Source: Magallana gigas (lineage: Eukaryota). From it: a stretch of DNA of 64,000 bases. Within the stretch, counting starts at the first letter, position 1. Each line of letters opens with the position of its first letter. Positions 10,853 to 45,676 of this stretch are shown here, piece after piece. Under the pieces are notes generated by a model. The model was not told the origin of the DNA. It was given only the letters and a program-made list of their open reading frames with translations, and searched no databases. The DNA lies in NCBI RefSeq assembly GCF_963853765.1, contig NC_088855.1, positions 38,254,001-38,318,000 of the forward strand, written 5' to 3'. Both the position numbers and the translations under genes were made by a program.

Positions 10853-13633
10853 ATGAAGACTGTGATAATCTTAATGGCAGTTATTATTCCAATGGTACAC
10901 GTATGTATTGCAAAGCTATTAGACATGATGCATCGGTCGTTTTATATTCATAAATGAACAATTCTTTTACGAATCAATTTGTAAATATGACTGAACAGGT
11001 TGAAATTCATGTAACAGATGTACCTGTAACAGTCATTCTAACGGGAAGAAGGAAAGTAAAGGTATATAAAAGAGTCTCAGAAAATACTTAATAGATAGAA
11101 ATAGATTTAGATATAGATATATAGTTTTCTCTGATCGGTGATAGTTTTATCTCAAGACCCGATCTATTTCCTTTAGTTTAAGTACTATTTAACATAAATT
11201 GTTATAGTGTCCATTATGTAATGAAGAGATTGTAATCTATCTCTTGCTCTGAAAAAAATTAAGAAAATTAAGAATACCTATATGAAAAGGGGGCGAGGTT
11301 AAAAAAAAAGTGTATTCTGATACATTTGTTTTAGGCATTTGCCCTGAGGATGTGTAATACGGGGTCCGAATGTAATGCAGACGAATGTTGTTTGTCCAAC
11401 ACCCCTCCCCGTGGACGCAGATTCCTGGACACCCACAGTCACCTTGGACATTGTGTTCCCATGGGAACGGACGGGTCTAGTAAGACTGAAATATACTGTA
11501 CTAATTCTACGACAATGATCTTTTAGTTTGTTATAGTCTATATTTCACATAGAGATTTCCTCTGAGTAAGTTAGAGAATAGCTAGGTAGGATGCCACTCG
11601 GTTTTTTACTGGTTACTAATGGAAAAGAGAGACAGTTCCGTTAAATTAAAATAAGTTCTCTATTCTTTAAGCGTCGGATGGAAAGTGCATTAAAACAGAA
11701 ACAAATTTCGAAACACCCTGTAGTAGAACACAGCAATGCACAAAGGCGAGATCGTTTTTACGCTTAAAATCTAAGGATCGATAATTCCGCATAAGTATGA
11801 AAATGCATAACGCTTATATGATGTAAGAAAACTAGAAAACAAAATATAAAATGTTTCCCCCTTGCCTAAGAAAGCTTTGTCCTCAAAGCTGCTTATATTT
11901 TCTTTTCTACCAGATATTTTTTAATTTCAATTATTCAATGTAATACTAAACTATGGTACTGTGCAAATTTGAGAAATAGAAATTCCCGTACCTGTCAGTG
12001 AGAAAAATTATGACATTTATAAACATCATTACTATGATATATACTCATCTACAGGATAACTAAAAGACAAACTAACGCTAATATCATGAAATATTAAAGA
12101 AACAAAATGCATTTGAAGTAAATATATACAGCAATAACACATAACGTGTCACAAAATCAATAAAACAAATGTATTTACAACTTGCAGCATAATAAATGAA
12201 TGTTCCAAAAAGAATTGTTATTATAAGTCACATTGTGAGATTTAGCCATATAGTAATTTTGGCCACAGAAGAATAATATTTGTAGATTGCATGAAAACAA
12301 ATGAAGTACAATGTGTTCACAAATGAAATAAATTCACAATTGTTAGTAAAATGAAGGTGAATTTAATGCACATAAGCCTTGACAGTACCAAGTAAAAATG
12401 CAAAAATGTACAAACACAAAAAGAAATGAATTGTAAAACAACGTAAGAGTTGTTAAAGCATCAACAATGAGAGAACCATAATGTGGTAATGGCTGATACA
12501 AATCATGGTGAGTGATAAAAACATGTATAATTTACCTTAAGGTTTCATGAATGTAAGAGGGAGGACAAATTTTCCAAAATGAAGGACATAATGGGAAATT
12601 TAAAACAGGGATCAAAATACATTCATGTCCATTTGTCAATTCAAAAACAATTTTTGTATATCTGTGCTTTTGTTTATTATAGAAATAATAAAGTGTCAAT
12701 GCCAAAAGAATGAAAATAATAAAAATTGTTATACATGTAGATATTTTTAAATTTTCTGAATTTTAAAACTTCAATGTAACATATATACAATCTAATATTA
12801 TACAAAATTCCTCAAACATCTGATGGATATGTATAGGTTGTCTTGTGAGATAATCACATCTAACAACGAGACCGGAAGATGTTGTATACGCATGCCCATG
12901 TAGCAATGGTCTACATTGTCATGGCAATGGTGTGAATGAGGTTCCACTCGGAGAAAGAGGTAACCAATCCCGGTCTTATTTACATCTTTTCCTTCTTCTC
13001 ACAATTAACCTTTCAAAAATCGATACATAAAAGCCCAGCCCCATATAAAGTAAAATCTTAAAATTTTCTTTTTAATTTTTTATATATTTTATTCTATTAA
13101 AGGGACTTGTACACGATTTGAGAACAAAAATTTTATTTTCATTTTTTATGTATAAAATGGTTTACTGGAGCATTTTAAATGATTGACCAAAATAGTAAAT
13201 GTTAAAGTCAAGTTACAAGCGAGATACAGCGGTAAGAATTGATAATTATGTAAACAAAGCTCGAGTCTTATAGTTGTTTACAAAAAATGTAATGTAGAAT
13301 TTTACCATTTCTCAGACAAAATGACATGTAAAAAACCAATTTAAACTAATTTAATATCTTCATAAATACTATTATCAACAAAAGAAAGATACATTTGATT
13401 GAAACTTACACCAATACAACACATGTAAAAATGACTATATTCGTGCTTTGTTTATAAAACCAAGAATTATGAACTCTGTATTTTGCTTATAATTTGATAT
13501 TTGAGTTTCACATTTTGACATAATATTATTAACTTCTATATTTATCAGTATAAACATTGAAAATGGAAAAACAAAATTTGAAAATTTTAAGTCAAATCGT
13601 GTCCAAGTCCCTTAAAGTCACTGTGCGTCATGA
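10853..13633 (+). pseudogene. Prokineticin/colipase-fold secreted peptide gene P1 (pseudogene)
   Basis: Exons 10853-10900, 11335-11479, 12837-12959 and 13617-13633. Premature TAA at 12851-12853 (TAT in P2). The last acceptor reads AA instead of AG, directly after a MITE insertion. Confidence 0.85.
13101..13612. mobile_element. Kolobok-type MITE (~512 bp) inserted at the last splice acceptor of P1
   Basis: TIR AGGGACTTG(T/G)ACACGATTTGA, flanked by TTAA-type sites. The empty site CCATTAAGGTCACTG is at ~31294-31308. Confidence 0.8.
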
Positions 13634-16634: not shown

Positions 16635-17058
16635 TATACAAATGTATAAAAAATATGCAATTGCTTTGAATAAAAGTTTATGAATAAAAAAGTTGTGATT
16701 GTAAATCCAAATGAACAACGACCGAGGCTAATGAAAGTAAACCCTACAATTTATCTTGAATGTTAACTAGACGAAATAAAAATTCTATATATGATAAAGA
16801 ATATTATGACGGTCAAACGTCGAATATTAAAAAGGCAGATAAGCAACCATTAACAGGATTTCATTCCAAATTTTCCGTGTACTATACATTTAAATTAAAT
16901 GTCGCGTTGGGTACCATTTAGTAATACAGAAAACACGGAAAGTTTTGATTTGGTTAGGTTGGTTGTTTCTTTAAATAAACACACTCAGATAGGAAGGGAG
17001 GTTGATAGCATCTGAGATAAACAGATTAACAGGTGTGAATATAAGACGTCCGATAGAC

Positions 17059-17966
17059 ATGACCCCCTAAAAACCCAACAATACTTGCAATATGCTTTGG
17101 ACTCTGTTTAGTACTTAATATTTTGTGTCATTAACGTATTTACATCTTATTTCACGTAATATGATGTTGTATTTGCCTAATATATCACGTTGTTTGACCA
17201 CTGGTATACATATATTGATACTAAATTGTTTGATCAATCTATATCGTAATATTTAAGGTACATCATACTGTCCTTTCATCAATAATGTTGGAAGACAAGA
17301 AACCAGATACAAATTGAGCTGTATTTATATATTCATTTAAACGCAAAAAATATTTCTAATACTTTCGACGTGTGAATATTGATACATGCTCTGATTCTAA
17401 GTTTTAGAAAAAAACTTTATAACAACAGACGTTTGTAATCAAGAAAACAATGGAACCTCGAATATGTTACCTAGCAACTGACTGTCATGAATGCTGTGAC
17501 GAATATGCTGTGTTTCTAACGTCCGACCGATCGGGAAAAGGCAGACGAGTTTCCATGGTCACTGCATTCCATTAGGAAAAGTCGGTGACGGTAACCGAGT
17601 ATCATGCGCATGGTTCAATGACCTTTTTGAATAAGACTGGTAAACAATGACTATAATAGTGAAATTTTCTTTGGAAAATAGGCAGATGTAAAGGCTCTTT
17701 CTGTTACATACTGAATAACGTGCTGTTTTGCATGATGTCTTGTGAGGAATGGTAACGCTACATCCAGACCCACTGAGCTCTTGTTTGCCTTTCCCTGTAC
17801 ACCCGGTCTATATTTTCATGGAGACCACCATTATGATATACCCTTAAGAGAAATTGGTACTCATGTTCTCTTTTTCATTTAGACATTCAATTGTCTGATT
17901 TTTAACTTTACCTTGCCTCAATTTCGCATGTTTTCTTTTTATTAAAGTCATTGTGCAAATCCATAA
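17059..17966 (+). pseudogene. Prokineticin/colipase-fold peptide gene P3 (pseudogene, P6 type)
   Basis: ATG ACC CCC TAA stop in exon 1; frameshift in exon 2 near 17500; exon 3 acceptor CAG>CAT; two Cys>Phe changes; exon 4 acceptor lost. Confidence 0.85.
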
Positions 17967-19755: not shown

Positions 19756-20676
19756 AATTTAAGAATGGCCGAAGGACTATAAAGACAACCTAGTTCTTAA
19801 TGTTTAAATAAATATGCTGTCTCGTTGATATATTTTTCATCAATTAATTTATTGATTGAATGATGGATTGATTGATTTTGATATAATATCTTAACATGAC
19901 TATTGAACTAAACATGAAGGCTACAAACGAATGTGGAAACAAAAAAAAACCCGTTAACTTGTAAAGCTGTTATTGAATGATGATACCGGGGGTTATAGTA
20001 TTTTTAGTATTTGCGGAACAGCATATCTCTATGTTTAACTATGTTTAACATATTGACTTTGAAACACATTTACAAGGTATCCAAACTACTCTGGTAGTAA
20101 ATGTGTAGCTATGTTTGGTTCCTTGGCTGCTTAGTTTACTGCTACTAGTCCAGGACGGGAGTATCCTATTATGTAACCACGAAACTATAAAATTCTCGAA
20201 AACCAGTTTTGGGGAGGATGCAATTTTCTGCTGGATGGATTAAGCTGTTCAACCTCGAGTGGTTCTTGTAGAGAAGTTGAAAGGATGGAACTATTTGATA
20301 TTAAAAATCGGTTATTGCGCTCAGGAAGCCTAATATAGTAGGCATCAGATATAGAGTTTTATGTGTTTCCAAGCAATCTGACGCTTTTATACATCATAAA
20401 TAATCATTATTACCATTATTACCACAAAAAATATACGGAAGTACTCAGAGTATTTTTTTTTCCAGTATTAAGCTCATTTATAATCAAACTGAATCAGAAA
20501 AACTCCAAAAACCTCTTGAACATACAGACCATTCAATCTCTTCCATTTATATTAAAGATTCCTGCGTACTTTCAGTTGTTTACAATTAAAGTTTCTGACA
20601 TTTTGACATAGCAATCGCACTCAACTGCGATGTAGAGTTGACATGTCTTTTATACTCTGTGTGACTTCTTTTCAGA

Positions 20677-22120: not shown

Positions 22121-22352
22121 TATAGTTTAAGAAGTATTTTCTTCAGAAATGAACACAGAGGTATAAAAATGAATATTGATCGAACAGTAGGCCAAAAACA
22201 GCCTATATTAGTTCTTTCCATTAAAGATAAAGACATATACATGTATATTTATAACAGAAGAAGTGTATATATCTTTAAGTTTTACATGTATATTTTACTA
22301 ATTTATAGAGGATACGAAGATAGAGCGACTAATTAATAACAGATTTGAGCTT

Positions 22353-26374: not shown

Positions 26375-28169
26375 GATTGTTATTACGATATAATATCTAT
26401 AACAAATATCAGTCAGGATTTCAACACGGTGATTCCACAACCAATCAGTTAGTTGAAATATATAATGCAATAATATCTAGTTTTGCTGAAGGTAGAGATA
26501 TCAGATTTGTGTTTTGCGACATCTCTAAAGCTTTTGATAGAGTGTGGCACAAAGGTATCCTATGCAAATTAAAATGCTATGGAATCTCTGATAAATTAAT
26601 ACGTTGGGTTGAAAACTACTTGTCTGATATAGCCCAGAAAGTAGTCTTTTTTGGTTTCTCATCAACATTGCGAAGTGCTAACTCTGGTGTCCAACAAGGG
26701 TCAGCGTTAGACCCCTTTTATTCCTTTTGTACATTAATGACATATCAACACACTTAGACAACCCAGTTAGATTATTTGCTGATGACACATTTTTGTATAT
26801 TATAGTAGATAATGATATTTTGACATATGTAAATTAACTAATGGTTTGGGTAAAATTAAGGAATGGTCTGATATGTGGGCAGTTGAATTGAGTCCAAATA
26901 AAACAGTTAATTTAGATTTTCGTAGAAGGAGTGTAAGTCATCCCAAAGTTAAACTTGGTGCTGATGGGCCTGCTATTGAACATGTTGAAACACATACTCA
27001 TCTAGATAAAAATTCCAGCAGGATGTAAATTGGAGAAAACATATTCTTGATTTTCTTGACAAAAATCAGTCTAAACCCTGTACTCGTTTGGATATCTTAA
27101 GAATGTTGAAACACACCCTTTAAAAGGGATGCTTTGATAAAAATTTACTTTACCTTTGTTCGCCTAGTTTTCGAATACTGGAATAATTGTTCCGATAGAG
27201 ATGCTAATCAACTTGAAGAAATTCAAGTTGCAGCAGCTGGAATTATTTCAGAATTATGTAAAATTCTTCAAGATCCTTGCTTTATGTTGAACTTGGTTGG
27301 GATACACTCGAAGTTCCACGTAAAATACATAAGCTTGTGTTATTTTATAAGATAGTTTATGGATTAGCATCTCAGTATTTAGTTGATCTGCTTAGACAAT
27401 GTTTACTACCTCAAAATTCTCATCCCCTAAGGAACCAGGACAGCCTTAAATTTCATGTCCACAAAAGAGAAAACAACCTCTTATATGAAAAGTTTCCCCC
27501 CTCAACAATTAGACTCTGGAATGAACTCCCATATAACATCCGTAGTCTTAAACAATCTCAACTTTTACACCTACCAAAATAAAATATATTGCTCCATAGC
27601 GCAGAAATACTTTAACTTCGAAAGGAAAATGTAATCCATTGTCAACTTCGTAACGCAAACTATTGATTCCTGAAGACTGACACTACCTTTTTCAATTCAA
27701 CTCATTCTTAATGGTGACATTAGTCTTACTTATGAACAAAATATTGCAATATTTAAATATGTTCATAATTTACTAAATATACAAAGAGATTTTAATAATC
27801 CATCTAGTCCTTCTTATTGTCCTAAACCACAGAACCTGAACCTGTGTATAAAACCTTTTGTTTGTATTTTTTCTTTTTTTCTTCTGATGAATATTATCAT
27901 TACTAGTTGCTACAAATTAAAGCATTATAATGAGTATTATGTTACATATTGTAATTTCTGGTCATTTGTTTTATATATACATGTACATATATGCATATAT
28001 TTATCAATATAATATATATTATAAAATTATTGTCAATATTGATAGACACTAAATCTTGTCTACATGACCCTAATCTTGTATGTCAGAGATAATTTATATA
28101 AGTAATGCCTGCTATCCCATCCCTTTATGTAATATATTGTATAATAAGTTATTGTTTGAATTAAATTAA
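26375..28169 (+). mobile_element. Degenerate CR1/L2-group LINE, 5'-truncated
   Basis: QSGFQHGDSTTNQL, FCDISKAFDRVWHKGIL, GVQQGSALDP and LFADDT RT motifs; frameshifted; 3' tail ending ~28169. Confidence 0.9.
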
Positions 28170-28293
28170 CTTCGCTGTCATTGTGTAGAGGCCATGATTT
28201 ATATGTGTAACTGTGTGTAAAGACTTTTGCTGATAAAATGGGTCTGATGAAACTTCTAAGTATGACACAGGTTCACTGCTAACAACCATCAAC

Positions 28294-31200
28294 ATGAAGG
28301 CTGTGATAATCTTAATGGCAGTTATTACTCCAATGGTACACGTATGTATTGCAAAAATATTAGATGTGATGCATTGGTCATTTTATATTCATAAATGAAC
28401 AATTCTCTAACGAATCAATTTGTAATATAAAGACTGAAGAGGTTGAAATTCATGTAACAGATGTACCTTAACAGTATTTCTAACGGGAAGAAGGAAAGTA
28501 AAGGTATATAAAAGAGTATGAGAAAATACTTTATAGATAGATATAGATATAGTTTCCTCTGATCGGTGATAGTTTTATCTGAAGACCCGATCTATTTCCT
28601 TTAATTCAAGTACTATTTAACATGAATTGTTATAATGTCCATTATGTAATGAAGAGATTGTAATCTATCTCTTGCTCTGTAAAAAATTTAAGAAAATTAA
28701 AAATACCTATATGAAAAGGGGAGAGGTTCAAAAAAGTGTATTCTGATACATCTGTTTTACATTGTAGGCATTTGCCCTGAGGATGTGTAATACGGGGTCC
28801 GAATGTAATGCAGACGAATGTTGTGTGTCCAACACCCCTCCCCGTGGACGTAGATTCCTGGACACCCACAGTCACCTTGGACATTGTGTTCCCATGGGAA
28901 CGGACGGGTCTAGTAAGACTAAAATATACTGTACTAACTCAACGACAATGATCTTTTAGTTTGTAATAGACTATATTTCACATAGAGACTTCCTCTGTGA
29001 ATATGAGTAAGTTAGAGAATAGCTAGGTAGGATGCCACTCGGCTTTCTACTGGTTGCTAATGGAAAAGAGAGACAATTCCGTTAAATTAAAACAAGTTCT
29101 TTATTCTTTAAGCGTCGGATGGAAAGTGCATTAAAACAGAAAGAAATTTCGAAACACCCTGTAGTAGAACACAGCAATGCGAAAAGGCCAGATTGTTTTT
29201 ACGCTTAAAATCTAAGGATCGATAATTCCGCATAAGTATGAAAATGTATAACGCTTATATGATTAAGAAAACTAGAAAACAAAATATAAAATATTTCCCC
29301 CTTGCCTAAGAAAACTTTGTCCTCGAAGCTGCTTAAATTTTCTTTTCTACAAGATATTTTTTTTATTTCAATTATTCAATGTAATACTAAACTATAGTAC
29401 TGTGCAAAAATATATACTCAAAATTTGAGAAATAGAAAATCACGTATCTGTCAGTGAGAAAAATTATGACAAATGCAATACATGTATAAACATCATTACT
29501 ATGAGATATACTCATCATCAGGATGACTAAAAGACAAACTAACACTAATATCATGAAATATTAAAGAAACAAAATGCCTTTGAAGTGAATATACATGTAT
29601 ATAGCGATGACACATATCGTGTTACAAAATCAATAAAACAAATGTATTTACAAGCTGGAGCATAATAAATGAATGTTAAAAAAAAATGTTATTATATGTC
29701 ACATTGTGAGATTTAGCCATATAGTAATTTCGGCCACAGAAGAATAATGTTTGTAGATTGCATGAAAACAAATGAAGAACAATGTACTCACAAATAAAAT
29801 AAATCCACAATTGTATGTAAAATGAAGGTACATATAATGCACATAAACCTTGATAGTACCAAGATTAAATGCAAAAATGTACAAACACAAAAAGAAATGA
29901 ATTGTAAAACAACTTAAGGGAGGTGTTCTTTGGTAGTTAAAGCATCAACAATGAGAGTACCATAATGTGGTAATGACTGATACAAACCATGGTGAGTGAT
30001 AAAAACTTGTTTATCGCAAGGTTGTTGAGTTATTCTTTTGGCTTGTAGAGCGGCGAAAAAAATTCAAGGGAATGGTTGATTTAACATTAATTGTACGTGT
30101 CCCAGAAATATTTCTGACATTAAAATCTGTCCAATAAATTCGCATTTACGAAGAAAATGGGTGTACATAAACATCAATTTCATGAATGTTAGAGGGAGGA
30201 CAAATTTTCAAAATGAAGGACATAATGGGAGATTGAAAACAGGGATCAAAATACATTCATGTCCATTTGTCAATTCAAAAACAATTTTTTTATATCTGTG
30301 CTTTTGCTTATTATAGAATAATAAAGTGTCAATACCAAAAAAATTAAAATAACAAAAATTGTTATAGATGGTTTAAAATTATCTGAATTTTAAAACTTTA
30401 ATGTAACATATATACAATCTAATATTATACAAAATTCCTCAAACATCTATTAAAGATTGACTAACCTATCCGGAGTCGTGTCGATTCAATTCTCAATGTT
30501 AAATAACTCTTTTTAAAAGGCAGTCACACATAAATAATAGTGACAAATAATTTAGTATGTTCAATAAATCTATTGGTCCGGGAAAGTAGATTATCTCATT
30601 TGTGAGTCAAAACCATTATAATACTTATTTCTTAGATCAATACGTTTAAATGAATATGAAAATATATCAACATGATTTTTTTTGTTCTAATTAAGATGAA
30701 TTACAAGCTTTTTTCTTGGAAGAAAACTATTCCCTTCTAAAAAGATTTTTTCAATTGGTTTGTTTTATTTTATTGGCATATATAACATTTTATTTTTATA
30801 CCATTAAACTATCTGAGTGGACGTTGTGTTCAAATCACGAATTAACCCATTATTTAAGCTCTAAGTTTTTAACCCAGCTGTTACAATGTAATGTATTTCA
30901 TTGCTCGGACCAAAGATTTTATATATAAATATAATTAGAAAGAGCAGTTTTGAGCCAATAGTAAGCAAGTTAATGACAGCTCATCTTCCATGCATATATA
31001 CTGTTACCAGTGGATTGTCTTACATGTATAGGTTGTCTTGTGAAATATTCACATCTTACAACAAGACCGGAAGATGTTGTGTACGCATGCCCATGCAGCA
31101 ATGGTCTGCATTGTCATGGCGATGGTGTGAACGAAGTTCCACTCGGAGAAAGAGGTAACCAATCCCGGTCTTACTTTCATCTTTCCCCTCCTCTCATAAT

Positions 31201-31318
31201 TTACCTTTAAAAATTCGATGCATATAAGCCTCAGCTCCATATAAAGCAAAATCTTAAAATTTTCTTTTTAATTTCACATGCATGTATTTTATTCCATTAA
31301 GGTCACTGTGCGTCGTGA
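28294..31318 (+). CDS. Prokineticin/colipase-fold (astakine-like, non-AVIT) secreted 10-Cys peptide P2, 110 aa, intact
   Basis: Exons 28294-28341, 28768-28912, 31032-31154 and 31302-31318, all GT-AG with phases 0/1/1. MKAVIILMAVITPMVHAFALRMCNTGSECNADECCVSNTPPRGRRFLDTHSHLGHCVPMGTDGSSCLVKYSHLTTRPEDVVYACPCSNGLHCHGDGVNEVPLGERGHCAS. Cys spacing C-x5-C-x4-CC-x20-C-x9-C-x17-CPC-x4-C-x14-C matches the prokineticin/MIT1 pattern. Confidence 0.85.
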
Positions 31319-32681
31319 AATTGAAGAAATCCATCCAATGGCTGAAGGCCTAGCTTCTTTTTGTTTAAATAAATATGTTACTGTCATTTGTCTTGTTGAT
31401 TCATCATTATTCATCATTAATAGATTGATCAAATAATGCACTGATGGATCGTTTTAGTTACTTACTTAACTAGACAATTCAACTAAACCTGAAGGCTACA
31501 AATGAATGTGGAAACAAATAAACATGAACTTACAAAGCTTTTGAATGATAGTAATGTAATTTATAGTAAGCGCAGAACTTATCCATTTATGAAATTAAAT
31601 ATGCGTTTCCACCAATGCAATACGTGCAAATACATAATTCCTCACACTCAGGTTTGCTAAAAGGGTCCTAGGAGAGAAACTTAGTACGATTATTGACGGT
31701 GCTTAACACTTGAATTAAAATTTCCCGTATAAATCTGGTGTTATCTGTCATGATGAGTTTTAATTGCCAATGTCATACTGTTCAAAATGTAATGGATGGC
31801 CTCCAGTTGTTATAGATGGTCCTATTTATTATAATACCTTGGACAAAGTTTTAAAGTTAATGCGATTTGTTCGTAAGGAAAGTCAAGAAATGTTATCCAA
31901 TGTGTATCTAAAGTTTGCTTCCGGCATAATACTCCAAAATATCAGCCAATGTTGAAATTTTACGGAATTAAATTGTTAAACTGTTGGGTAAAACTATTTT
32001 CAACTTATTGACTTTGAGACATCTTTACAAGGTATCCAAACTACCAGGGCATAAACGTCCTCTTGTGTAGCCATGTTCGGTTCCTTGTCTGCTCTGTCCA
32101 GGATGAGAGTATCCTATTATGTAACCACGAAACAATAAAATTCTGGAAAACCAGTTCATGGTGAGGATACAATTTTCTGTTGAAACGGGAAATGAAATTC
32201 TTTATTTAGTTTTTTGCACCTTTTATGTTTTAAGTGTGGATGGATTAAGCTGTTCAACCCCGAGTGATTCCTGTAGAAAAGTTGAAAGATGGAATTATTT
32301 GATTTTAAAAATCGGTTAGTGCATTTAAGTAGATTGATATAACAGGCATCAAATATATACCATTTTGTGTTTCAAAACAAACATTTCTGCTTTTAAATTT
32401 TATCAATGGTAATCATACGTACCATTTAAAAAACCCCGGAACTACTCAGAGTATTTTTTCCCAGTATTAAGCTCATTTAAAATCAAACTGAATCAGAAAA
32501 TCTCCGGAAAACTCTTGTAAATACAGACCATTCAAATTCTTCCTTTTAGATTAAAGCTTCCTTGATTGTTTACAATTAAAGTGTTTGACATTTGGACATA
32601 GCAAACATACTCAACTGCAATGTAAAATTGAATTAAGTCAATGACCATGAAGCTTATCTAAAACACCTGTTTATACACTGG

Positions 32682-34150
32682 ATGTCTTTTTTCAGTTGTT
32701 CATTGAAATGGCATAACAGAATGAAGACAGCAAGCCGATTTCTTTCTCCTGTTGAATGTGCTCGCGGGGAGGAGGTTGGTGAAATTGGATCCATCCTCAT
32801 CATGTCCATTGTGCTTGGGATACTTGTAGTGCCTATTGTTGTGTATGGACAACGGCCGGAGTCCGACACCGATGCCGTTAATATCGTCACGGGAATCAAC
32901 GTAACCGTTAGATTGCTAGCGGCGGTAACGCTGGTTGTTGCATTTTCTGCAATTCGCAATAACATGCAGGAGTGGGTCAACGATAAGAGCTCCAACATGA
33001 TAATAAAAACCAAATTGGTATTTATCTGGATTTTTGGATTCGCCAAGATGGTATTCATTACGATAAAAGTCCTGTTCTATCTGAAATGCAGATATTTAAT
33101 ATCACTCGAGTTGACAAAAACTATAATCACTGACTGCTTCACAAGCATCATATTTGTGATTTTACAGCTTGTCTTTTTTCAGTATGTTGCGCGCTATACC
33201 TTTACGACCAAACCCATCATTAAATATATCTCCTCAGTTGTCGCCATTGCAAATGTTATGGAATTTTCATAGCGCTTACATTAAGTGTCAACGAAAACAA
33301 AGATCTCATTTTCGATAGAAATGAGACAGATATAGAAAACTGCACCGGATATAGCCTCAAAACAGTCAACAACATCATGTTTATCAATGAAGCTTTCAAA
33401 GCACCAATCAATCTTCAATTTTCGGCGCTGGCAATAACTCTTGCTTTCAGTATGAAGGCAGATGCTGAAAATCTATTAAGTCAGTGCAATATCTTGGGCT
33501 TAAAATTTTCATGGACGTCTCCGAAGAGGTTGGCAAAGATTATCACTACCATTTTACTTATGAATGTTCCCCTTCTGGTTTGTGCACCATTCAATATTTT
33601 AAATTCCGAGAGTGAAACTCAATCCCGGATATGGTTGAGTTTAATGTTTGCACAAAAGACGGCTGCTCTAATTTGCATTTTATCTATAAATTATCTGATG
33701 TTTAAGAAACTGAAATTGACCGTGAAATATGTCAGCATCAATGCAAATGAATTCATGCTTTTACTGAGTACTATCGGGGTAATGTCTTACATGTCGATGC
33801 AGGCATTTTACCAACGTGACGTCGATGGTATTCTGACGTCATTGATTGTCATTAGCCTGCCCTCTATTCTATACCAGGTTATCATCATTTTATTTGGGAG
33901 ACGAGTGGACCTTATTGGCAATGAAATTTCCGCTGTACATTCGATTCAACAACTTGTGCTTATCCTTGGTTGCCAGAACATAGCAGTATGGTTCAACGAT
34001 TTTCTTTACGGCGTTTGGGACATGTCTAATGACCATATACTTCGACATAGTGTATTCAAGTATATAGCACTCATACTGTACCCTTTGTTAGCCTACTATA
34101 GGTTTCAATCGGCTATGGAGCTTATGGAGTTGTACTGCCATGTGTCTTGA
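32682..34150 (+). pseudogene. OTOP-like: Otopetrin-like copy B', one -1 frameshift (pseudogene or sequencing error)
   Basis: ATGGAATTTTCATAG versus ATGGATTTTTTCATAG in paralogs (~33258-33272), a 1-nt loss in a T run. Otherwise open to TGA 34150. Confidence 0.75.
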
Positions 34151-34554
34151 AATACAACATATGCAATTGCTTTGAATTAAAAGTTAATGTATAAAAAAAG
34201 ATGTGATTGTAAATCCAAATAAAATGATCGAGTCTTATGAAAATAAAACCTATTGTTTATCTGGAATGTTGACTAAACGAAATTAAAATTTTATATATGA
34301 TAAAGATTATTATGACGGTCAAACGTCGAATATAAAAAGGCAGATGAGCATACATTTTATTTCAATTTTTCCGTGTACGATACATGTAAATTAAATGTCG
34401 CGTTGGGTACTTTTTAGTAATACAGAAAACACGGAAATTTTTGATTTGGTTCAGTTGGTTGTTTCATTAAATAAATACACTCAGATAGGAAGGGAGTTTG
34501 ATAACATCTAAGATAAACAGATTAACAGGTGTGAATATAAGACGTCCGATAGAC

Positions 34555-35487
34555 ATTGCCCCTATAAACCAAACCATTCTTGCAATATGCTTTGGACTCT
34601 GTTCAATATGTAATATTTTGTGTCATTAATGTATTTACATCTTATTTAAGGTCGTATGATGTTGTATTTACAACTTATTTCAAGTTGTATGACCACTGGT
34701 ATAGACATGTTGATATTAAATCGTTTTATCTATCTATATCATAATATTTAACGTACATTATACTGTCCTTTCATGAAAAATGATCGAAGACAAGAAACAA
34801 GATACACATTGAGCTGTAGTAATATATTCATTTAAACGCAAAAAATATTTCTAATAATTTTTGACGTGTGAATATTTATACATGCTCTAATTCTAAATTT
34901 ACAAAAAAATAACTTAATAAAAACAGACGTTTGTAATCAAGAAAATAATGGAACCTCAAATATGTTACCTAGCAACTGACTGCCATGATAACAAATGCTG
35001 TTTCTAACGTCCGACCGATCGGGAAAAGGCAGACGAGTTTCCATGGTCACTGCGTTCCATTTTGAAAAGCTAGAGACGGTATATGAAGAGTATTAAGATT
35101 TAACCAAGTATCACATGCACTGGTTCAATGACCTTCTGAATAATACTGGCAAACATTGATTATAACAGTTAAATTTTCTTTGGAAAATAGGCAGATGTAA
35201 AGGCTCTTTCTGTTACACACTGAGTAGCGTGCTGTTTTGCAGGATGTCTTGTGAGGAATGGTAACGCCACCTTCAGACCCACTGAGCAGGTGTTTGCATG
35301 TCCCTGTACACCGGGTCTATATTGTCATGGAGACCACCACTATGACATACCCTCGGGAAAAATTGTTACTCATGTTCTCCTTTTCGTTTAGACATAGAAT
35401 TTTCTGATTTTCAAATTTACAACTATACCTTATCACAATTTCGCACGTTTTCTTTTTTTTTTTTTAGGTTATTGTGAAAATCCATAG
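34555..35487 (+). pseudogene. Prokineticin/colipase-fold peptide gene P5 (pseudogene, P6 type)
   Basis: ATG>ATT; exon 1 donor GT>AT; 2-nt deletion and stops in exon 2 (34927-35078); exon 3 (35243-35365) donor GT>TT; exon 4 at 35468-35487. Confidence 0.85.
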
Positions 35488-36353
35488 ATTATTGCTCTGA
35501 CCCAAGATCCCGGCGTATTTGTTATTTTTAAAAATGATAATCGTGTAGGGAAAAAAATACAAAAAGAAATTAAAAATGAATGACAAGGAAGAAAAAAGTG
35601 CAAAAAATATATTTTTCTTAATAGACAGCTAATGTATGCGTTTTGTGTTATTACGTAATTTGCACAAGATATTTGATATGTACGCTCTCCTGGTAATAGG
35701 TTCTACATTGTATTATTTGCTTAGCTGTAAGCCCAAGGTTCACAAATAAGTACAACATACATTTCTCTACAAAAAAAACAACAACCCCGAGTGCCTCGGT
35801 TGCTTACTACTCCAAGCATTGTTCCGAAAAGGTTAAAGGTAAGAATTGATAAGTTTAAAACTATAATTTGAAATATCAGTAAGCAAGAAGCAAAGTGCAG
35901 AAAACTTAAGTAAAAAACTATGATAGGTAGGATAGATATGGGATAGATAGATAGGACATGCAAATTCTCTTAACTCATAATTTATGAATTTTCCCAAAAC
36001 TTTAAAGACAATTAGTTATCTGAAAAAGTTGTTCTAAAAAGGATTTGTCAATTGGTTTGTTTTATTTGATTTGACATATTTAATACATCGAACTTTTTAT
36101 CTATATATCTGTCCATTTAACTATATAAGTGAAAGTTGTGTTCAAATAACGCATTAACCCATTATTTACGCTTTACGTTTTAACCGACCTGATAAAATTG
36201 TGATGTATTTCCTTGCTCTGACCAAAGATTTTATTCATATACATATAATTAGAACGAGCAGTTTTTAGTCAAGGATAAGTTGTAAATCAGAGTTGAAGCC
36301 AGCTAATCTTCCATGCATATAAACCGTTACCTATGGATTGTCTTATTAGCTAG

Positions 36354-36621
36354 GTTGTCTTGTGAGATATTCACAACGAGACCGGAAGAGTTGTATATGC
36401 ATATTCATGTTGCAATGGTCTGCATCGCCTAGGCAATGCTTTGAACGAGGTTTCACTCGGAGAAAGAGGTAACAAATCCCAGTCGTATCATCATCATTCC
36501 CCTTATCTAACAACCTACCTTTCAAAATTCGCTACTGATAAGCCCCAGTCCAATTTAAAATCTTATAATTTTCTTTTTCATTTCCTTTATTTTATTCCAT
36601 TAAGGTCACTGTACGTCATGA
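36354..36621 (+). pseudogene. Orphan exon 3 + exon 4 relic of a P1/P2-type peptide gene
   Basis: Frameshifted exon 3 at 36354-36468 and exon 4 at 36605-36621; no exons 1-2. Confidence 0.8.
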
Positions 36622-37600
36622 AATTTAAGAAATTCATCCAATGGCCGAAGGACTATAAACACAACCTAGTTCTTAATGTTTGAATAAATATGTTGTCTCG
36701 TTGATTTCTTTTTCATCAATTGATTTATTGATCGAATGATGGATTGATTGATTTTGGTTTAATATCTTAACAAAACTATTCAATTAAACATGAAGGCTAT
36801 AAACGAATGTGGAAACAAATAACCCGTTAACTTGTAAAGCTGTTATTGAATGATTATACCGGGGGTATAGTATTTTTGGTATTTGCGGAACAGCATATTT
36901 CTATATATATGTTTAACTATGTTTAACTTATTGGCTTTAATAACATTTACAAGGTATCCAAACTACTGTGGTAGTAAATGTGTGGCTATGTTTGGTTCCT
37001 TGGCTGCTTAGTTTACTGCTACTTGTCCAGGACGGGAGTATCCTATTATGTAACCACGAAACTATAAAATTCTCGAAAACCAGTTTTTGGAGGATACAAT
37101 TTTCTACTGAAACGGAAAATGAGATTTTTTATTCAGTCTTTAGCACCTTTTATGCTTTAAGTGTGGATGGATTAAGCTGTTCAACGAATGGTTCTTGTAG
37201 AGAAGTTGAAAGGATGGAACTATTTGATTTTTAAAATCGTTTAGTGCGTTCAGGTAGCCTTATAGAGCAGGCATCAGATATAGAGTTTTATGTGTTTCCA
37301 AGCAATCTGACGCTTTTATACATCATAAATAATCATTATTACCATTTCAATATACGGAAGTACTTAGAGAATTTTTTTTCCAGTATTAAGCTCATTTATA
37401 ATCAAACTGAATCAGAAAATCTCCAAAAACCTCTTGAACATACAGACCATTCAAACTCTTCTATTTATATTAAAGTTTCCGGAGTACATTCAGTTGTTTA
37501 CAAATAACGTTTCTGACATTTTGACATAGCAATCGCACTCAACTGCGATGTAGAGTTGACATGTCTTTTATACTCTGTGTGACTTCTTTTCAGTTGTGCA

Positions 37601-39027
37601 TTGGAATGGCATGACGGAATGGGAACAGCAAGCCGATTTCTTTCTCCTTTTAAATTCGCCGGTGGGGAGGAGGGTGGTGAAATTGGATCCATCCTGATCA
37701 TATCCATCGTGCTTGGGATACTTGTGGTGCCTACTGTTGTGTATGGACAACGGCCGGAGTCCGACCTCGATGCCGTAAATATCGTCACCGGGATCAACGT
37801 AACCGTTAGATTGCTAGCGGCGGTGACACTGGTTGTTGCATTTACTGCGATTCGTTATAACATGCAGGAGTGGGTCAACGATAAGAGCTCCGACATGATA
37901 ATAAGAACCAAATTGGTATTTATCTGGATGTTCGGAGTCGCCAAAATGGTATTCATTGTGATACAAGTCCTAATTTATCTGAAGTGCAGGTATCTAATAT
38001 CACTCGAGTTGACAGAAACTATAATCACTGACTGCTTCACAAGCTTATTTTTTTTCAGCATGTTGCGCGCTATACGTTTACGACTAAACCCATCATTAAA
38101 TATGTCTCCTCTGTTATTGCCATAGCAAATTTTATGGATTTTTTCATAGTGCTTACTTTAAGTGTTTACGAAAACAAAGATCTCATTTTCGACAGAAATA
38201 AGACAGATATAGAAAACTGCACCGGATTTCGCCACAAAACTGTCAACAACATCATGTTTATCACTGAAGCTTTCAAAGCACCAATCGCTCTCCAATTTTC
38301 TGCGCTGGCAATAACACTTGCTTTCAGGATGAAGTCAGATGCTGAAAAATCATCAACTCAGTGTAATATTTTGGGCTTAAAGTTTTCATGGACGTCTCAG
38401 AAGAGGTTGTCAAAGATTATCGCTATCATTGTACTTATGAATGTCCCCCTTCTGGTTTGTGCACCATTCAATATTCTAAATTTCGAGAGTGAAACTCAAT
38501 CCCGGATATGGTTGAGTTTAGTTTTGGCACAGAAAACGGCTGCTCTTATTTGCATTTTGTCTATAAATTATCTGATGTTTAAGAAACTGAAATTGACCGT
38601 GAAATATGTCAGCATCAATGCCAATGAATTCATGCTTTTACTGAGTACCATCGGGGTAATGTCCTGTATGTCGATGCTAGCGTTTTACCAACGTGAAGTC
38701 GATGGTTTTTTGACGTCATTGATTGTCATTAGCCTGCCCTCAATTCTATACCAGGTTATCATCATCTTATTCGGGAGACGAATGGATCTCATTGGCAATG
38801 AAATTTCCGCTGTTCACTCGATTCAACAACTTGTGCTTATCCTTGGTTGTCAGAACATAACACTATGGTTCAACGATTTTCTTTACGGCGTTTGGGACAT
38901 GTCTAATGACCATATACTTCGGCATAGTGTATTCAAGTATATAGCACTCATATTGTACCCTTTGATAGCCTACTATAGGTTTCAGTCGGCTATGGAGCTT
39001 ATGGAGTTGTACCGCCATGTGTCTTGA
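37601..39027 (+). pseudogene. OTOP-like: Otopetrin-like copy C' (pseudogene)
   Basis: 22-nt deletion at ~38045 between AGC microhomologies shifts the frame; first in-frame ATG at 37619. Confidence 0.85.
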
Positions 39028-39262
39028 TATAGTTTAAGAAGTATTTTCTTCAGAAATGTACACAGAGATATAAAAATGAATATTGATCGAACAGTAGGCC
39101 AAAAACAGCCTATATTAGTTCTTTTCATTAAAGATCAAGGCACATATACATGTATATTTATAACAGAAGAAGTGTATATATCTTTAAGTTTTACATGTAT
39201 ATTTTACTAATTTATAGAGGATACGAAGATAGAGCGACTAATTAATAACAGATTTGAGCTTA

Positions 39263-39312
39263 GAGAGAGAGAGGGAGAGAGAGAGATAGAGAGAGAGAGG
39301 GAGGAAGGAAGG
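39263..39312. repeat. Imperfect (GA)n / GGAA tract
   Basis: Direct read. Confidence 0.9.
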
Positions 39313-39329
39313 AAAAATATTTGTATATA

Positions 39330-41589
39330 TATAGCAGCTATGATAGACTGAGGATTTGTTCTACATTTACATGTAAGATACATTTAGTACATTGTTTATC
39401 ATTGATGTTAAGTTACATTCTAAAATCTTTTATTGCCCAAATCAGCATTAAAATTGCTAAAAAAAAAATGTCTTAGTTGACAATGAAATATATTTTAATT
39501 TTTTTGTCCATGGTTATATAATTTACTGGATTTTTGCTTTGTATACTTTGCTTAAATTTGGGTATTCTAGTTGAAGATTTTACATTGTCTGGCAAAGTGT
39601 TCCATAACTTGACTGTTGAGGGCAAACAGCTATTTTAGTGTGCAACAGTTCTAGTAATTGGAATGTGAAATTAGTTATCATTGCGTAGGGAATAATTATG
39701 TGAAACTGGTAGACATTGTTCAACCATATCATACAAATATTCAGGTGTATAATTATTAAGTATTTTGTACGTAAAGGTAATTTTCTGTTTTCTTTTCTTC
39801 TAGCACTAAATGTTTCCTACCCTAATTCATTATATACGTTTTTTGAGGATGTGCGTCTGAATCCTTTGATGATGTGCGCAGCCTCAATTTGTAAACATTC
39901 TAATAAATTACTCTTGTGTACAGTTATCCCATACTTCATCACCATATTCTAAAAGAGGTCGGATAAAAGAAAAGTAAACTAACTAAAGACTCCCTGTTTA
40001 GTTTATACCTAAAGGCGCGAAGATTATTTAAAGCTGATATGCTTTATCAAACAATTTTAAGAATATGTTCAGTCCAAAAACCATTTCATGTGAGAGTAAG
40101 TCAGTGGCTTTGTTGTCGACCTTTTTGTGAACAAGATCATTTGTTAAAGATACAGGTCCTATTGCATCGGAGTCTACAATTATCATCGGTAAATAACCGA
40201 ATTGATTTTCAAAATTAACAGTTATATCATTGATATATATCAAAATCAGAAAATAGACCAAATGCAGAGCCTTGGGGAACACCTGCATTCGTATTTTGTT
40301 TGGTAGAAGAGTATCCTTCTAGCAATATATTTTGTTCATGGTCAGAAAGATAATCTCAAATCCAATCTAGTATGCTTCCAAATATGCCATTTTGTTGAGG
40401 TTTGTATAATAGACCCTTATGCCAAACCTTATCAAACGCTTTTGAAATAACACAGAAAATAAACCCAACATCTTTTCCGTTGGTCTAGATTTCTAATGAT
40501 TGTATTACATATTTCTAAAAGTTGATACACAGAAGAATATCTGCGTTGAAATTCTGATTGGTTTTTAGATAAAAGATTATGCTCTAACATGTAGTTGTAG
40601 AGGTATTTAAAAATTATTTTCCCCTGATTTTGCATAGAATACTAGTTAAAGCAATTTGTCTATAGTTTCCTAGCTCGTCGGGACTACCTTTCTATTATAA
40701 ACTGGTGTAATTTTAGAAAGTTTTCACACATGTGTGAGTTGTTTACAAGTCAATGATGCTTTGTACATTTTGGTAAGGGGTCCAGTGATGGAAGGAATAA
40801 TATTCTTAAGTTCCTGGGGTTTAGATGGATTTATTTTTTAAACTGATCTTCTATTTTAAATATGTTCACAGAAAATGGAGGACCAGGTCCTTGAGGAGGT
40901 AATAGGGGTTCTGAACTATCCTCATCTCGTGAGATATTTGCAAAATGTTTGTTGTTGTTTGTTGTCAATCGGGTGTATACTAAATGCTAAATATATGTAA
41001 ATATATGTATACTAAATGCTGTATACTAAATGCTACCATTTGATTTAATTGGTGGGGATTTAGTTTTTTTGTTTTTGTTTTGTTTTTGTTTTGTTTTTTT
41101 TGGTTTTGTTTTGTTTTTGGTGTTTTTTTATGGAGAATTTAGTTATTGATTAAATATTCTAAGCCATTCCCCAGGGGGAATTGCTTTATTCAATATATGC
41201 AAGGTAAATTTTTCTTTGTAATTTTGTTTTGATTTGCGTACCATGCTTAAAACTTCATTACGTATATGTTGATATTTATCCCATTGGTAATCATTGTTTT
41301 TTAAATTTTGCCTTATAGTGTACCCTGTTTCTTTGTCGCATTTTACGTCTAATCTCACTAGTAATGAATGGTTTATCCGACGGTTGAATAGTACCTAATT
41401 TTTTGGAATTTATTGTCAACATAATGATTGTATTCTTTATTAAAATTGTCAAAAACATCATTAATGCTGTGATTATTGGATATCTCCCTATCCCAATCGA
41501 CATCTAATCGTAATTGTTTGAAGCTAGCATTTGCAAACTTCTTATATATCTTTAGTATGAATGTTATTTAAATGTTATAAAATGTAGAT
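39330..41589 (-). mobile_element. Degenerate CR1/L2-group LINE (duplicate of 22430-24611)
   Basis: Colinear with the unit-1 copy; homology stops at 41589. Confidence 0.85.
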
Positions 41590-41960
41590 AACTAGTGGTC
41601 AATAAGTTTGATAAATGAGTTCACTATCACAGTCTTTTCTTTGCCAATTTACACATATTTATTTATTTATTTATATACCAGTATACTGAGCATTTACTTT
41701 GTGTATAAATTCCTGTATATCTGTCACACTTAGCAGATGTCAATGGCAAACGTTGTATCTTTACACAAAGAAAACTTTTGAAATAACATTCTTAGTAAAA
41801 TAAAAAAAACTTAACTTTGTGTCCACCGTGTGTATTTATAGTCAAAGAATCACAATTCCCACATGAAAATTAGATAATTATCCAAAAGCCATATATTTAC
41901 ACTAGAGCTGAGAAAAGAACCTACACTATGTTTGACCTTGACCCACATTTGCCTTGGCCT

Positions 41961-42533
41961 TGGTATTTATCTGGATGTTCGAATCGCCTAGATAGAATTC
42001 ATTGTGATAGAAGTCTTGTCTGAAATGCAGATACATGTATCTAATATCACTCGAGTTGACAGGAACTATAATCACTGACTGCTTCAAAAGCATCATACTT
42101 GTGATTTTACAGTTTGTCTTTTTTCAGTATGTTGCGCGTTATACGTTTACGACCAAACCCATCATTAAATATATTTTCTCTGTTATTGCCATCGCAAATT
42201 TTATGGATTTTTTCATAGTGCTTACTTTAAGTGTCAACGAAAACAAAGATCTCATCTTCGACAGAAACAAGACAGATATAGAAAACTATTAGTATACCAG
42301 ATCATCATCATCTTATTCGGGAGATGAGTGGACCTCATTGGCAATGAAATCTCCGCTGTACACTTGATTCAGGAACTTGTGCTTATCCTTAGTTGCCAGA
42401 ACATAGCAGGATTGTTCAATGATTTTCTTTACGGCGTTTAGGACATGTCCAATGACCATATACTTCGGTATAGTGATACAATAGGTTTCAGTTGGCTATG
42501 GAGCTTATGGAGTTGTACAGCCATGTGTCTTGA
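41961..42533 (+). pseudogene. OTOP-like: Otopetrin-like copy D (degenerate relic)
   Basis: Starts mid-gene (LVFIWMF-like); large internal deletion after TDIEN; stops and indels; ends ...MELMELYSHVS*. Confidence 0.85.
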
Positions 42534-42944
42534 TATACAATTATGCAATTGCTTTTAATTAAAGTTAATGAGTAAAAATTAAATATGTGATTGCGAATGA
42601 ACAATGATAGAGTCTCATTAAAGTCCTACTATTTATATTGAATGTTGACTAAACCAAATAAAAATATATATACGATAAAGAATGTTAAAACGATCAAACG
42701 TCGAATACTAAAAAGGCAGATGGACAAACATAAAACAGTATTGTCCCAATTTTTCAGTGTATCACATATACACATGTGAATTAAATGTCTCGTAATGTAA
42801 TTTTTAGTAATACAGAAAACACGGAAATTTTTGATTTGGTTAAGTTGGATGTTTCTTTAAATAAATACACTTAGATAGGAAGGGGGTTTGATAACATCTA
42901 AGATAAACAGATTAACAGGTGTGAATATAAGACCTCCGATAGAC

Positions 42945-43895
42945 ATGGCCCCTATAAACCCATCAATACTTGCAATATGCTTTGGACTCTGTTCAGTACG
43001 TAATATTTTGTGTCATTAATGTATTTACATCTAATTTCAGGTTGCATGACGTTGTAATTACAAGATATTTCAGGTATGACCACTGGTATACATAACTGTT
43101 CGATCTACCTGTACATCGGACATTAATATTTAACGTATATATTCTGAACTTTCATTGATAATGATAATTGGAAGACAAGAAACAAGATGTATATTGAGCT
43201 GTATTAATATATTCATTTTAACGCATAAAAATATATATTTATAATAATATTTGCGGCATGGTCTTGTGAATACTGAAACATGCTCTGATTCTACTTTTTA
43301 AAAACCATGGCTACAGACATTTGTGATCAAGGACACGGTTGAACCTCGAATGTGTAACCTAGCAACTGACTGCCAGGATAACGAATGCTGTGTTTCTAAC
43401 GTCCGACCGATCGGGAAAAGGCAGACGAGTTTCCATGGTCACTGCATTCCATTAGGAAAAGTCGGGGACGGTATTTGAAGAATATTTAGATTTATTTCGG
43501 TTTAACCGAGTATCACGTGCATGGTTCTATGACCTTCTGAATAATACTGGCAAACAATGACTATAATAGTGAAATTTTCTTTGGAAAATAGACAGATGTA
43601 AAGGCTATTTCTGTTACATACTGAATAACGTGCTGTTTTGCAGGATGTCTTGTGAGGAATGGTAACGCGACCTCCAGACCCACTGAGCTGGTGTTTGCAT
43701 GTCCCTGTACACCGGGTCTATATTGTCATGGAGACCACCACTATGACATACCCTTGGGAGAAATTGGTATCGTATTCTCTTTTGAATTTAATTGAATACA
43801 ATTTTTTTTCTGATTTTTAACTTTACAACAGTTACTATACCTTATCTCAATTTCACATGTTTCTTTTTTATTTAGGTCATTGTGCAAATCCATAG
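42945..43895 (+). CDS. Prokineticin/colipase-fold secreted 10-Cys peptide P6, 115 aa, intact
   Basis: Exons 42945-42995, 43317-43470, 43644-43766 and 43876-43895. MAPINPSILAICFGLCSTFVIKDTVEPRMCNLATDCQDNECCVSNVRPIGKRQTSFHGHCIPLGKVGDGCLVRNGNATSRPTELVFACPCTPGLYCHGDHHYDIPLGEIGHCANP. Exon 1 is the least certain. Confidence 0.8.
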
Positions 43896-44691
43896 ATTAT
43901 GGCTCTGACCCAAGATCCCGGCGTATTTATTATTCCGCAAAATGATATTATTGTTGAAAACAAATACAAATATAAATTAAAAATGGATGACAAGGAAGAG
44001 AAAAGTGCAAAAACTATTTTTCTTTATAAAGAGCTAATGTATGGGTTATGTGTTATTACATAATCCGTACACGATATTTGATATGTACGATCTCCTGACA
44101 ATAGCTTCTATTATTTGCTTAGCTGTAAGCACAAGGTTTACAAATACGAAATATATATACATTACTTTACCAAAAAATAACGAGAGCCTCGGTTACTGCC
44201 TACTCCATGCATTGTTTTGAAAAGATGAACGTATTAAACATATGGTATGATTCGGTGAAATTCAAAACTATAAAATAAAATACTAGTAAGCAAGAAGCAA
44301 AGTGCAGAAAATTTGGAGTAAAAAACCATAATATAGGTAGCCGGAATGGACATGCAGATTCTCTAAACTCATAATTTATAAATTTCCCCAAACTTTGAAG
44401 ACAATTCGTTGTCTAAAAAGTTGGGTTTTTTTTGAAATTCCGAGAATAGTTCGATTTTGTCAGAACAGATCGGCAAAGCGATGTTTTACTGCAAACGAAG
44501 GGAAACTTCTGTCATTTTTTTAGAATTGTCTAATCGTAAAAACAGGATTTTGAAACGAAAAAGAATGTTCAGTTAGAGATCTCCCCTTTCTTCGTCCTTA
44601 CATGGTTTTCATGATAACATTATACACTAAACATGGTATGATAAGGAGTGGTTACAATAAGGCTGAACTAGTTCTAGACCATATTGCCATA

Positions 44692-45676
44692 ATGACGCTG
44701 ACACGCGCTCTCTGGATTTTGTTAGTATGTTATCACGGAGCTGTGCTTTATGTGAGTAACTTTTTACATTTCGACAATGTGGTCCATCGAACGTAAAATA
44801 ACACATACAAAATGTTTCATTGATGAAAACATATTTCCTCATTACTCTTAATTTTCTCTTTCAAAATGTTAAAAAAACATTCTTCCTCGTTTTCCTCATT
44901 AAGACTGATGCAGCAGCGACAAATAAAGGTTGCAACTCGGCAACGGAATGTCTAGACAATGAGTGCTGTGTTTCCATTAACCAACCCATTGGGAGAAGGC
45001 AGCTTCACGGCCATTACAGTGGGCACTGTGTACCCATGGGTATGGACGGGGACGGTAAGTAAAGATTAAGGCTGGATCTCTCTGTATGTTTGCTTTTTTA
45101 GACCAAGGTCTTGTTTCCCTAATGAATTAAGAGAAGTGTTGCTATATAATTTTTTTTCGTTTTCAATTCATTTCCTCTTCCTGAATTAAAAACTAATTTA
45201 AAAGTGCATATAATGCTAAGTGATCGTGCATCACAGTCATCACCATTGTCTGAAAAAATAATGATTTACAAGTCCAGGAAGTAAATAAGAAATTGTGGAA
45301 AGTGTTTAGATCTGGTATTACATGTCCCATAACCAGTTCGAATTATTCGTCGTACAGGTTGTCTAGTCAGAACAGGAAATGCCACTACCCGCCCCCTTGA
45401 CGTGGTGTTATCCTGCCCCTGTACCCCCGGGCTCTACTGCCACGGTGATCATCTTTACGTCGTACCCATGGGAGAGCAAGGTTCTTCAAAATTTGACAGG
45501 GTTAAATAATTAATAAATTTTTTATCGATTTTGAAAAAGGTCTTGAAATAATATTGAACCTTTATCAAATTAATTGACGGAAATCGGAAGATGTAGATAT
45601 TTTTTTTTTTTTATTTTGATAAAAATAATGAATGTTAAATTTTGCGTGTATTGTAGGTCACTGTACCAGTCCTTGA
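44692..45676 (+). CDS. Prokineticin/colipase-fold secreted 10-Cys peptide P7, 117 aa, intact
   Basis: Exons 44692-44751, 44904-45054, 45358-45480 and 45657-45676. MTLTRALWILLVCYHGAVLYTDAAATNKGCNSATECLDNECCVSINQPIGRRQLHGHYSGHCVPMGMDGDGCLVRTGNATTRPLDVVLSCPCTPGLYCHGDHLYVVPMGEQGHCTSP. Confidence 0.88.

Follow-up and report, generated by a model that had tools for sequence, protein, structure and literature searches.

Three genes on the plus strand of a 64,000-nucleotide stretch of the Magallana gigas genome (contig NC_088855.1, positions 38,254,001 to 38,318,000; hereafter the window) form a cluster encoding small, probably secreted peptides with ten cysteines. These genes, here called P2, P6 and P7, belong with the Cragi-prokineticins published in 2021. 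In each of the three peptides, the loop between the fourth and the fifth cysteine harbours a glycine followed by a basic pair, and the alignment of homologues indicates that this motif is deeply conserved. At a distance of seven residues from the preceding CC pair, its consensus reads [R/Q]-P-[I/L/R]-G-[K/R]-R. We propose, with a probability of roughly 0.45, that a convertase cuts the loop at this site and that the mature peptide would thereby consist of two disulfide-linked chains, the short one probably amidated.

The loop motif and its conservation

An earlier note, made from the sequence of the window alone, had reported G-[KR]-R sites in all three peptides, and we could confirm each of them in frame and in an intact gene. 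In P2, the codons GGA CGT AGA (28846-28854) encode G-R-R in the context PPR-GRR-FLD. The codons GGG AAA AGG (43413-43421) of P6 give G-K-R in the context RPI-GKR-QTS, and GGG AGA AGG (44991-44999) of P7 gives G-R-R in QPI-GRR-QLH. All three motifs are located between the CC pair (C3 and C4) and C5, that is, in the Cys4-Cys5 loop. This loop has 20, 17 and 19 residues in P2, P6 and P7, respectively, compared to 11 in the aligned Bv8, in agreement with the 17-20 versus about 11 residues given earlier for oyster and vertebrate peptides. The residue after the site is Gln in P6 and P7, also as noted before, and Phe in P2. Upstream of the pair, P2 has an Arg at cleavage subsite P4 (R-G-R-R, which fits the furin consensus), P6 has an Arg at subsite P6 and P7 has neither. 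Each loop contains a single basic site, leaving no connecting peptide to be excised. Variants of P7 were found in RNA reads: 44994 A>C and 44999 G>A both yield synonymous Arg codons, and 44988 A>C replaces the preceding Ile by Leu. Swaps between GRR and GKR were also observed among alleles or relatives.

The ten-cysteine pattern C-x5-C-x4-CC...C...C...CxC...C...C was found in the exon translations and in the full-length products P0002 and P0006. The AVITGA hexapeptide is absent from the mature N-termini of both products. Pfam scores were 13.1-18.5 bits for PF06607 (Prokineticin), below the gathering cut-off of 21.6, and 17-21 bits for MIT_LIKE_ACTX, below the cut-off of 27.5. With single exon peptides, the C1-C5 exon gave no Pfam match and the second exon only weak MIT-like and colipase matches. 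The Prokineticin match is real though sub-threshold; matching proteins are named 'Prokineticin domain-containing protein' in UniRef, and Bv8 is the best sequence match in PDB. A structure predicted with AlphaFold2 (AF2) from the alignment of 65 domains reached a predicted local distance difference test (pLDDT) of 82 overall and was used in place of a single-sequence model (pLDDT 51), which was discarded. Its top Foldseek matches were MIT1, U33-theraphotoxin, colipase, draxin, Dkk and Bv8, with probabilities of 0.69-1.0 and E of ~0.01-0.7; no Foldseek match reached E<=0.001, though the fold is right. The modelled domain is thus predicted to adopt a colipase/MIT1 fold. In this model, the block of residues 31-40, which contains the site, lies between two strands and has the lowest pLDDT of the domain (65), and the site is predicted to occupy an exposed loop where the first beta-hairpin finger has its tip. 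An identity with the oyster CgAstakine was considered for the three genes and rejected, as the CgAstakine primers (PMC9797820) had no match in the window.

To survey the family, a full HMMER search was performed with the three oyster-family domains as query, which gave 106 relatives. A word-based protein search with the P7 exon found near-identical oyster fragments only, and HMMER was needed to reach other taxa. Entry P0064 (Deltaproteobacteria) and the long multi-stretch matches P0029 and P0084 were excluded from the counts as probably unrelated Cys-rich repeats. The P0064 cluster, derived from metagenome-assembled genomes, consists of 611-residue proteins that match the profile at E ~1e-7 in five stretches. 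Across 65 representative domains, the Gly, the K/R and the R/K columns of the motif were each conserved in 62/65, next to Cys columns of which seven were invariant and the other three present in 64/65. Together with P72, P88, G90 and G93 (numbered on mature P6, residues 18-115 of P0006), the motif columns were the most informative non-Cys columns. Among the proteins with E<=1e-10, a threshold at which the selection of matches cannot have been driven by three motif columns, 34 of 35 have a Gly-dibasic site, the exception being A-K-R. When distinct C4-C5 loops were counted, a dibasic run was present in 99 of 104 and directly preceded by Gly in 79. These counts place the motif far beyond chance. 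They also answer the question of conservation, on which the earlier note had made its proposal depend, strongly in favour of the motif. The rest of the loop diverges around it, as that note had described for the oyster peptides.

Named family members were found in the bivalves Ostrea, Mytilus, Mizuhopecten, Dreissena, Sinanodonta and Ruditapes, in the gastropods Littorina, Elysia, Haliotis and Aplysia, in the annelids Owenia and Lamellibrachia and in the brachiopod Lingula. In an independent set of sequences, G-K-R is also present in three more brachiopod genera and in a phoronid (supplement of PMC8557429). The motif is thus kept in Mollusca, Annelida, Brachiopoda and Phoronida, which argues that the site is functional. 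Short loops of ~11 residues that lack the motif are found in nemertean sequences, in shrimp astakine and in the bee homologue of Apis florea (supplement of PMC8557429), in the Platynereis domain (PMC3890597) and in vertebrate prokineticins and Bv8. This distribution, with the motif in lophotrochozoan long loops and in none of the short-loop relatives, argues that the motif marks a lophotrochozoan long-loop subfamily of the prokineticin/astakine peptides. What makes the loop longer than in vertebrates is, in essence, the motif together with a spacer of variable length. In a distant paralogue at another locus of Magallana gigas (LOC105329352, P0089), this loop position is occupied by R-R-V-R-R and no Gly precedes it, which reads as a furin-type site without an amidation donor. 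Literature text searches, with hexapeptides such as RPIGKR and with prokineticin or astakine combined with dibasic cleavage, gave no prior mention of the loop site. We found no discussion of the conserved loop motif anywhere in the searchable literature, in which peptides of this kind have been published as Cragi-prokineticins.

Proposed processing at the site and other explanations

According to our proposal, a convertase of the furin or proprotein convertase (PC) type would cut after the basic pair in the secretory pathway, after which a carboxypeptidase would trim the basic residues. The exposed Gly would then be used by peptidylglycine alpha-amidating monooxygenase (PAM). This would leave a short chain (C1-C4) with an amidated end, ...PPR-amide in P2, ...RPI-amide in P6 and ...QPI/L-amide in P7, held to the long chain (C5-C10) via the C2-C5 and C3-C7 disulfides. 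The disulfide map C1-C4, C2-C5, C3-C7, C6-C9, C8-C10 was assumed from MIT1 and colipase. The two-chain topology put forward in the earlier note follows from this map if the loop is cut; we infer the cut and the amidation themselves, as well as the map and a pyroglutamate on the long chains of P6 and P7. The same note had called the product insulin-like. This holds for the two-chain topology only, since the peptides have a single site and no connecting peptide, and the ten-Cys colipase fold is not the six-Cys fold of insulin.

Several fine features of the loops look like those of a convertase and amidation site. The distance from the CC pair to the Gly is 7 in 70 of the 79 Gly-dibasic loops, and anything between 2 and 22 residues can follow downstream of the basic run. 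The basic run itself comprises 2-5 residues (GKR, GRR, GRKKR, GKKKR, GKRKR, GKRRRR, GRRRR), and loops without the Gly retain a basic pair (AKR, SKR, TKR, RRVRR). A basic residue is present at subsite P4 or P6 in 30 of 44 two-residue sites, compared to ~16% expected from a K/R content of 8.6%. In 67/79 loops, the residue at subsite P1' belongs to the set S, Q, A, G and D; Pro never occurs there, and P2' is mostly aliphatic. Gln at P1', as in the P6 and P7 peptides, occurs in 18/79 loops and is thus common without being family-wide. A few loops of distant homologues have a second basic site downstream, and cutting at both sites would remove a short connecting segment. The low pLDDT of the loop block and the synonymous nature of both variants in the Arg codons of P7 fit the same reading. 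Furin is able to nick several bacterial AB toxins in loops that span 14-21 residues, and by analogy cutting inside a disulfide-closed loop of such size is feasible. Precedents closer to the present case are the annelid prokineticin precursors, which give amidated peptides from their N-terminal region (PMC3890597), the vertebrate PK2L, which is cut to PK2beta (PMC8877203), and the spider toxins CsTx-8/12/13 and omega-agatoxin-1A, in which intraloop cutting results in two chains (PMC6468893).

Conservation alone cannot separate a cut site from an epitope, and it is well possible that the motif is an uncleaved surface element. It would then form a P-x-G turn at the tip of finger 1, with a basic pair that binds a receptor, a glycosaminoglycan or a membrane, and the mature peptide would be a single chain. 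P-x-G makes a good turn, and the colipase-fold model places the site at a hairpin tip. Finger loops of this fold are binding surfaces, through which colipase and Dkk make their contacts, and in vertebrate prokineticins a residue needed for activity lies in the very loop considered here. In addition, the basic stretches of PK1 and PK2beta bind heparin (PMC8877203). A number of observations point in the same direction and weigh against a cut. Dibasic pairs elsewhere in the domain are not avoided (42 observed versus 38 expected), and the linkers of tandem-domain homologues are mostly without dibasic sites. The P6 and P7 peptides lack an Arg at subsite P4 and would therefore be poor substrates of plain furin, requiring PC1/3- or PC2-like enzymes. 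Furthermore, the Cragi-prokineticins have their main expression in digestive gland, which is not a neuroendocrine pattern, and they were treated as single ten-Cys chains in a study whose mass spectrometry did not target very long peptides (PMC8398477). In the searchable literature, we found no report of a cleaved or amidated form of these peptides. On the other hand, an epitope is not expected to tolerate a basic run of 2-5 residues, a Gly always directly before it and a hypervariable part downstream. In about half of the family the loop, predicted to be exposed on a secreted protein, contains a complete R-X-K/R-R furin consensus, and it would be hard to keep such a site uncut. The pattern at P4/P6 and P1' matches convertase preferences.

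The remaining explanations are less probable. A regulatory nick without amidation, either as an on/off switch operated by extracellular or digestive trypsin-like proteases or as an inhibitor-type reactive loop with Arg at P1, would fit the digestive gland expression and a basic loop that is predicted to be exposed and braced by disulfides. Yet the residues of inhibitor reactive sites usually vary fast between paralogues and are nearly invariant here, neither Pfam nor PDB searches showed similarity to an inhibitor family, and the near-invariant Gly before the basic pair is left without explanation, so that we consider such a nick improbable. That the motif reflects the mere common descent of young paralogues and has no function is hardly credible. 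P6 and P7 are indeed adjacent genes, 57-62% identical in the C1-C5 exon, in a window full of 77-93% identical duplications, but the motif has persisted in four phyla, with free divergence in the remaining loop. Sharing of the motif through recent paralogy only is refuted by the homologue survey. Convertase cutting, with probable amidation, is also the starting point of a bolder claim, namely that in molluscs, annelids, brachiopods and phoronids the long-loop peptides function obligately as two-chain ligands with C-terminal amidation, whose receptor-activating ends are created by the cut. The role that the free AVITGA N-terminus has in vertebrates would then fall to the short chain's amidated end, to the N-terminus newly formed on the long chain, or to both. 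In this general form we regard the claim as unlikely.

Relation to known systems and significance

The closest known peptides are the Cragi-prokineticins 1-5 of the Pacific oyster, which have a signal peptide and, like the present peptides, ten cysteines and no AVITGA. They were described as intact ten-Cys chains, and the loop motif was not mentioned (Mar Drugs 2021, PMC8398477). The arthropod astakines of crayfish and shrimp and the oyster CgAstakine are also protostome cytokines with a prokineticin domain and colipase fold and without AVITGA; shrimp astakine differs in its short C4-C5 loop, which has no basic pair (supplement of PMC8557429). Vertebrate prokineticins, Bv8 and MIT1 share the ten-Cys colipase fold, MIT1 and Bv8 being among the best structural matches of our model. 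In contrast to the oyster peptides, the vertebrate prokineticins have AVITGA and an 11-residue C4-C5 loop without G-K-R. The basic insert of the vertebrate PK2L comes from an extra exon and is located in a different loop (C6-C7). Similar to the processing proposed for the oyster peptides, the conversion of PK2L to PK2beta involves cuts within the domain, at basic sites (PMC8877203).

The prokineticin proneuropeptide of the annelids Platynereis and Capitella is a lophotrochozoan substrate of convertase and amidation, with ...LFV-G-K-R units. Its amidated peptides precede the domain, directly after the signal peptide, and the loop of the domain is short and motif-free (PMC3890597). The N-terminal amidated units of the Platynereis precursor, ...RPLFV-GKR and ...LLFV-GKR, resemble the RP[IL]-GKR of molluscs (supplement of PMC3890597), a likeness that may be chance or a relic of shared origin. 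The spider toxins CsTx-8/12/13 and omega-agatoxin-1A and the insulin superfamily resemble the proposed oyster form in that one precursor undergoes cutting within a disulfide-closed loop, after which disulfides hold the chains together (PMC6468893). They differ in fold and in protease, spiders using the PQM protease. An internal piece is also lost from insulin and from the spider toxins, whereas the three oyster loops have one site only.

Prokineticin- and astakine-like peptides are widespread in protostomes, without a known cognate receptor of the prokineticin-receptor type (PMC8557429), and they are without the AVITGA end on which vertebrate prokineticins depend. That a site of convertase/amidation type is almost invariant in one finger loop across four lophotrochozoan phyla points to a functional hot spot and predicts a concrete mature form that is easily tested. 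Should the mature form be two-chain and amidated, the recombinant single-chain proteins employed in functional work may misrepresent the natural ligand. If, in addition, the two-chain form were obligate, the peptides would represent a new class of heterodimeric colipase-fold hormones and offer a handle on the protostome receptor.

Gene models, transcripts and duplicated copies

Four coding exons make up each gene: the first encodes the candidate signal peptide, the second C1-C5 and the third C6-C9, and a short last one holds C10 (Table 1). The N-terminal exons of P6 and P7 encode hydrophobic candidate signal peptides and are spliced to the domain exons. Every splice joint of P6 and P7 was present in RNA runs, with GT..AG ends. 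The full-length product of P7 corresponds to the Logan-derived protein P0002 and that of P6 to UniProt A0A8W8K8W0_MAGGI (P0006), which is 98% identical. Overall, the products show 90-100% identity to entries of Magallana (Crassostrea) gigas. For P2, the comparison was made one exon at a time, and not as a joined protein, with P0011 of Ostrea edulis ('prokineticin Bm8-f-like'); identity was 68% for the C1-C5 exon and 79% for the C6-C9 exon, and P0011 has the same PPRGRR as P2.

Table 1. Exons of the three intact genes and the pseudogene copies of the C1-C5 exon in the window
Feature	Position	Strand	Basis or remark
P2 exon C1-C5	28768..28912	+	sequence and translation; AG/GT boundaries read from sequence
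P2 exon C6-C9	31032..31154	+	tblastn match to exon 2 of P6/P7; intact
P2 last coding exon (G-H-C-A-S-stop, holds C10)	31302..31318	+	read from sequence; layout as in P6/P7
P6 signal-peptide exon	42945..42995	+	tblastn of P0006 residues 1-17; RNA joint 42995>43317, GT..AG
P6 exon C1-C5	43317..43470	+	match to A0A8W8K8W0_MAGGI (P0006); RNA splice joints
P6 exon C6-C9	43644..43766	+	RNA joints 43469>43643 and 43765>43875
P6 last coding exon (H-C-A-N-P-stop, holds C10)	43876..43895	+	RNA joint
P7 signal-peptide exon, from likely start Met	44692..44751	+	tblastn of P0002; RNA joint 44751>44904, GT..AG
P7 exon C1-C5	44904..45054	+	translation; protein matches; RNA reads
P7 exon C6-C9	45358..45480	+	RNA joints 45053>45357 and 45478>45655
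P7 last coding exon (H-C-T-S-P-stop, holds C10)	45657..45676	+	RNA joint
P1, duplicate of P2 exon 1, same PPRGRR	11341..11478	+	pseudogene: TAA at 12851-12853 in exon 2
Copy of P6 exon 1, RPIGKR still readable	17429..17592	+	pseudogene: frameshift (~17490)
Copy of P6 exon 1, RPIGKR still readable	34927..35080	+	pseudogene: 2-base deletion (frameshift ~35000) and in-frame stop

Six copies of the C1-C5 exon are present in the window, namely the intact P2, P6 and P7 and three pseudogenes. The stop codon of P1 lies in its exon 2 (12836-12961), a duplicate of the C6-C9 exon of P2. In the pseudogene at 17429..17592, the copy of exon 2 has two Cys-to-Phe changes. The prokineticin-like genes are carried on tandem segmental duplications (10148-18867 versus 27584-36419, with further copies to ~44400), which have an offset of ~17.4 kb and are 77-93% identical.

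The RNA data also contained minor forms. In run X1, one contig extends without a break from the last exon of P6 (43875) as far as the splice donor (44751) that ends the signal exon of P7, which suggests either read-through or a first exon of P7 that overlaps the 3' end of P6. The 202-residue UniProt entry K1RJZ2_MAGGI (P0004) is a fused model of P6 and P7 (43335-45482). In the same run, a second upstream exon (43040-43070) is joined to 43314 at the P6 domain exon (GT..AG, skipping 243), beside the joint 42995>43317, and may be an alternative first exon of P6. A minority joint of P7, 44751>44910 (run X22), has six extra letters, ACTGGC, and was found instead of the joint to the 44904 acceptor; an indel between alleles, located where the mature P7 peptide starts, is the probable reason. 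Between the peptide genes, a repeat of ~1.45 kb, 84-90% identical, occurs five times (15160-16638, 20676-22124, 32702-34154, 37567-39031 and 41960-42287). This repeat, likely a mobile element, has an open frame rich in Cys and His (15299-15364, 32810-32875).

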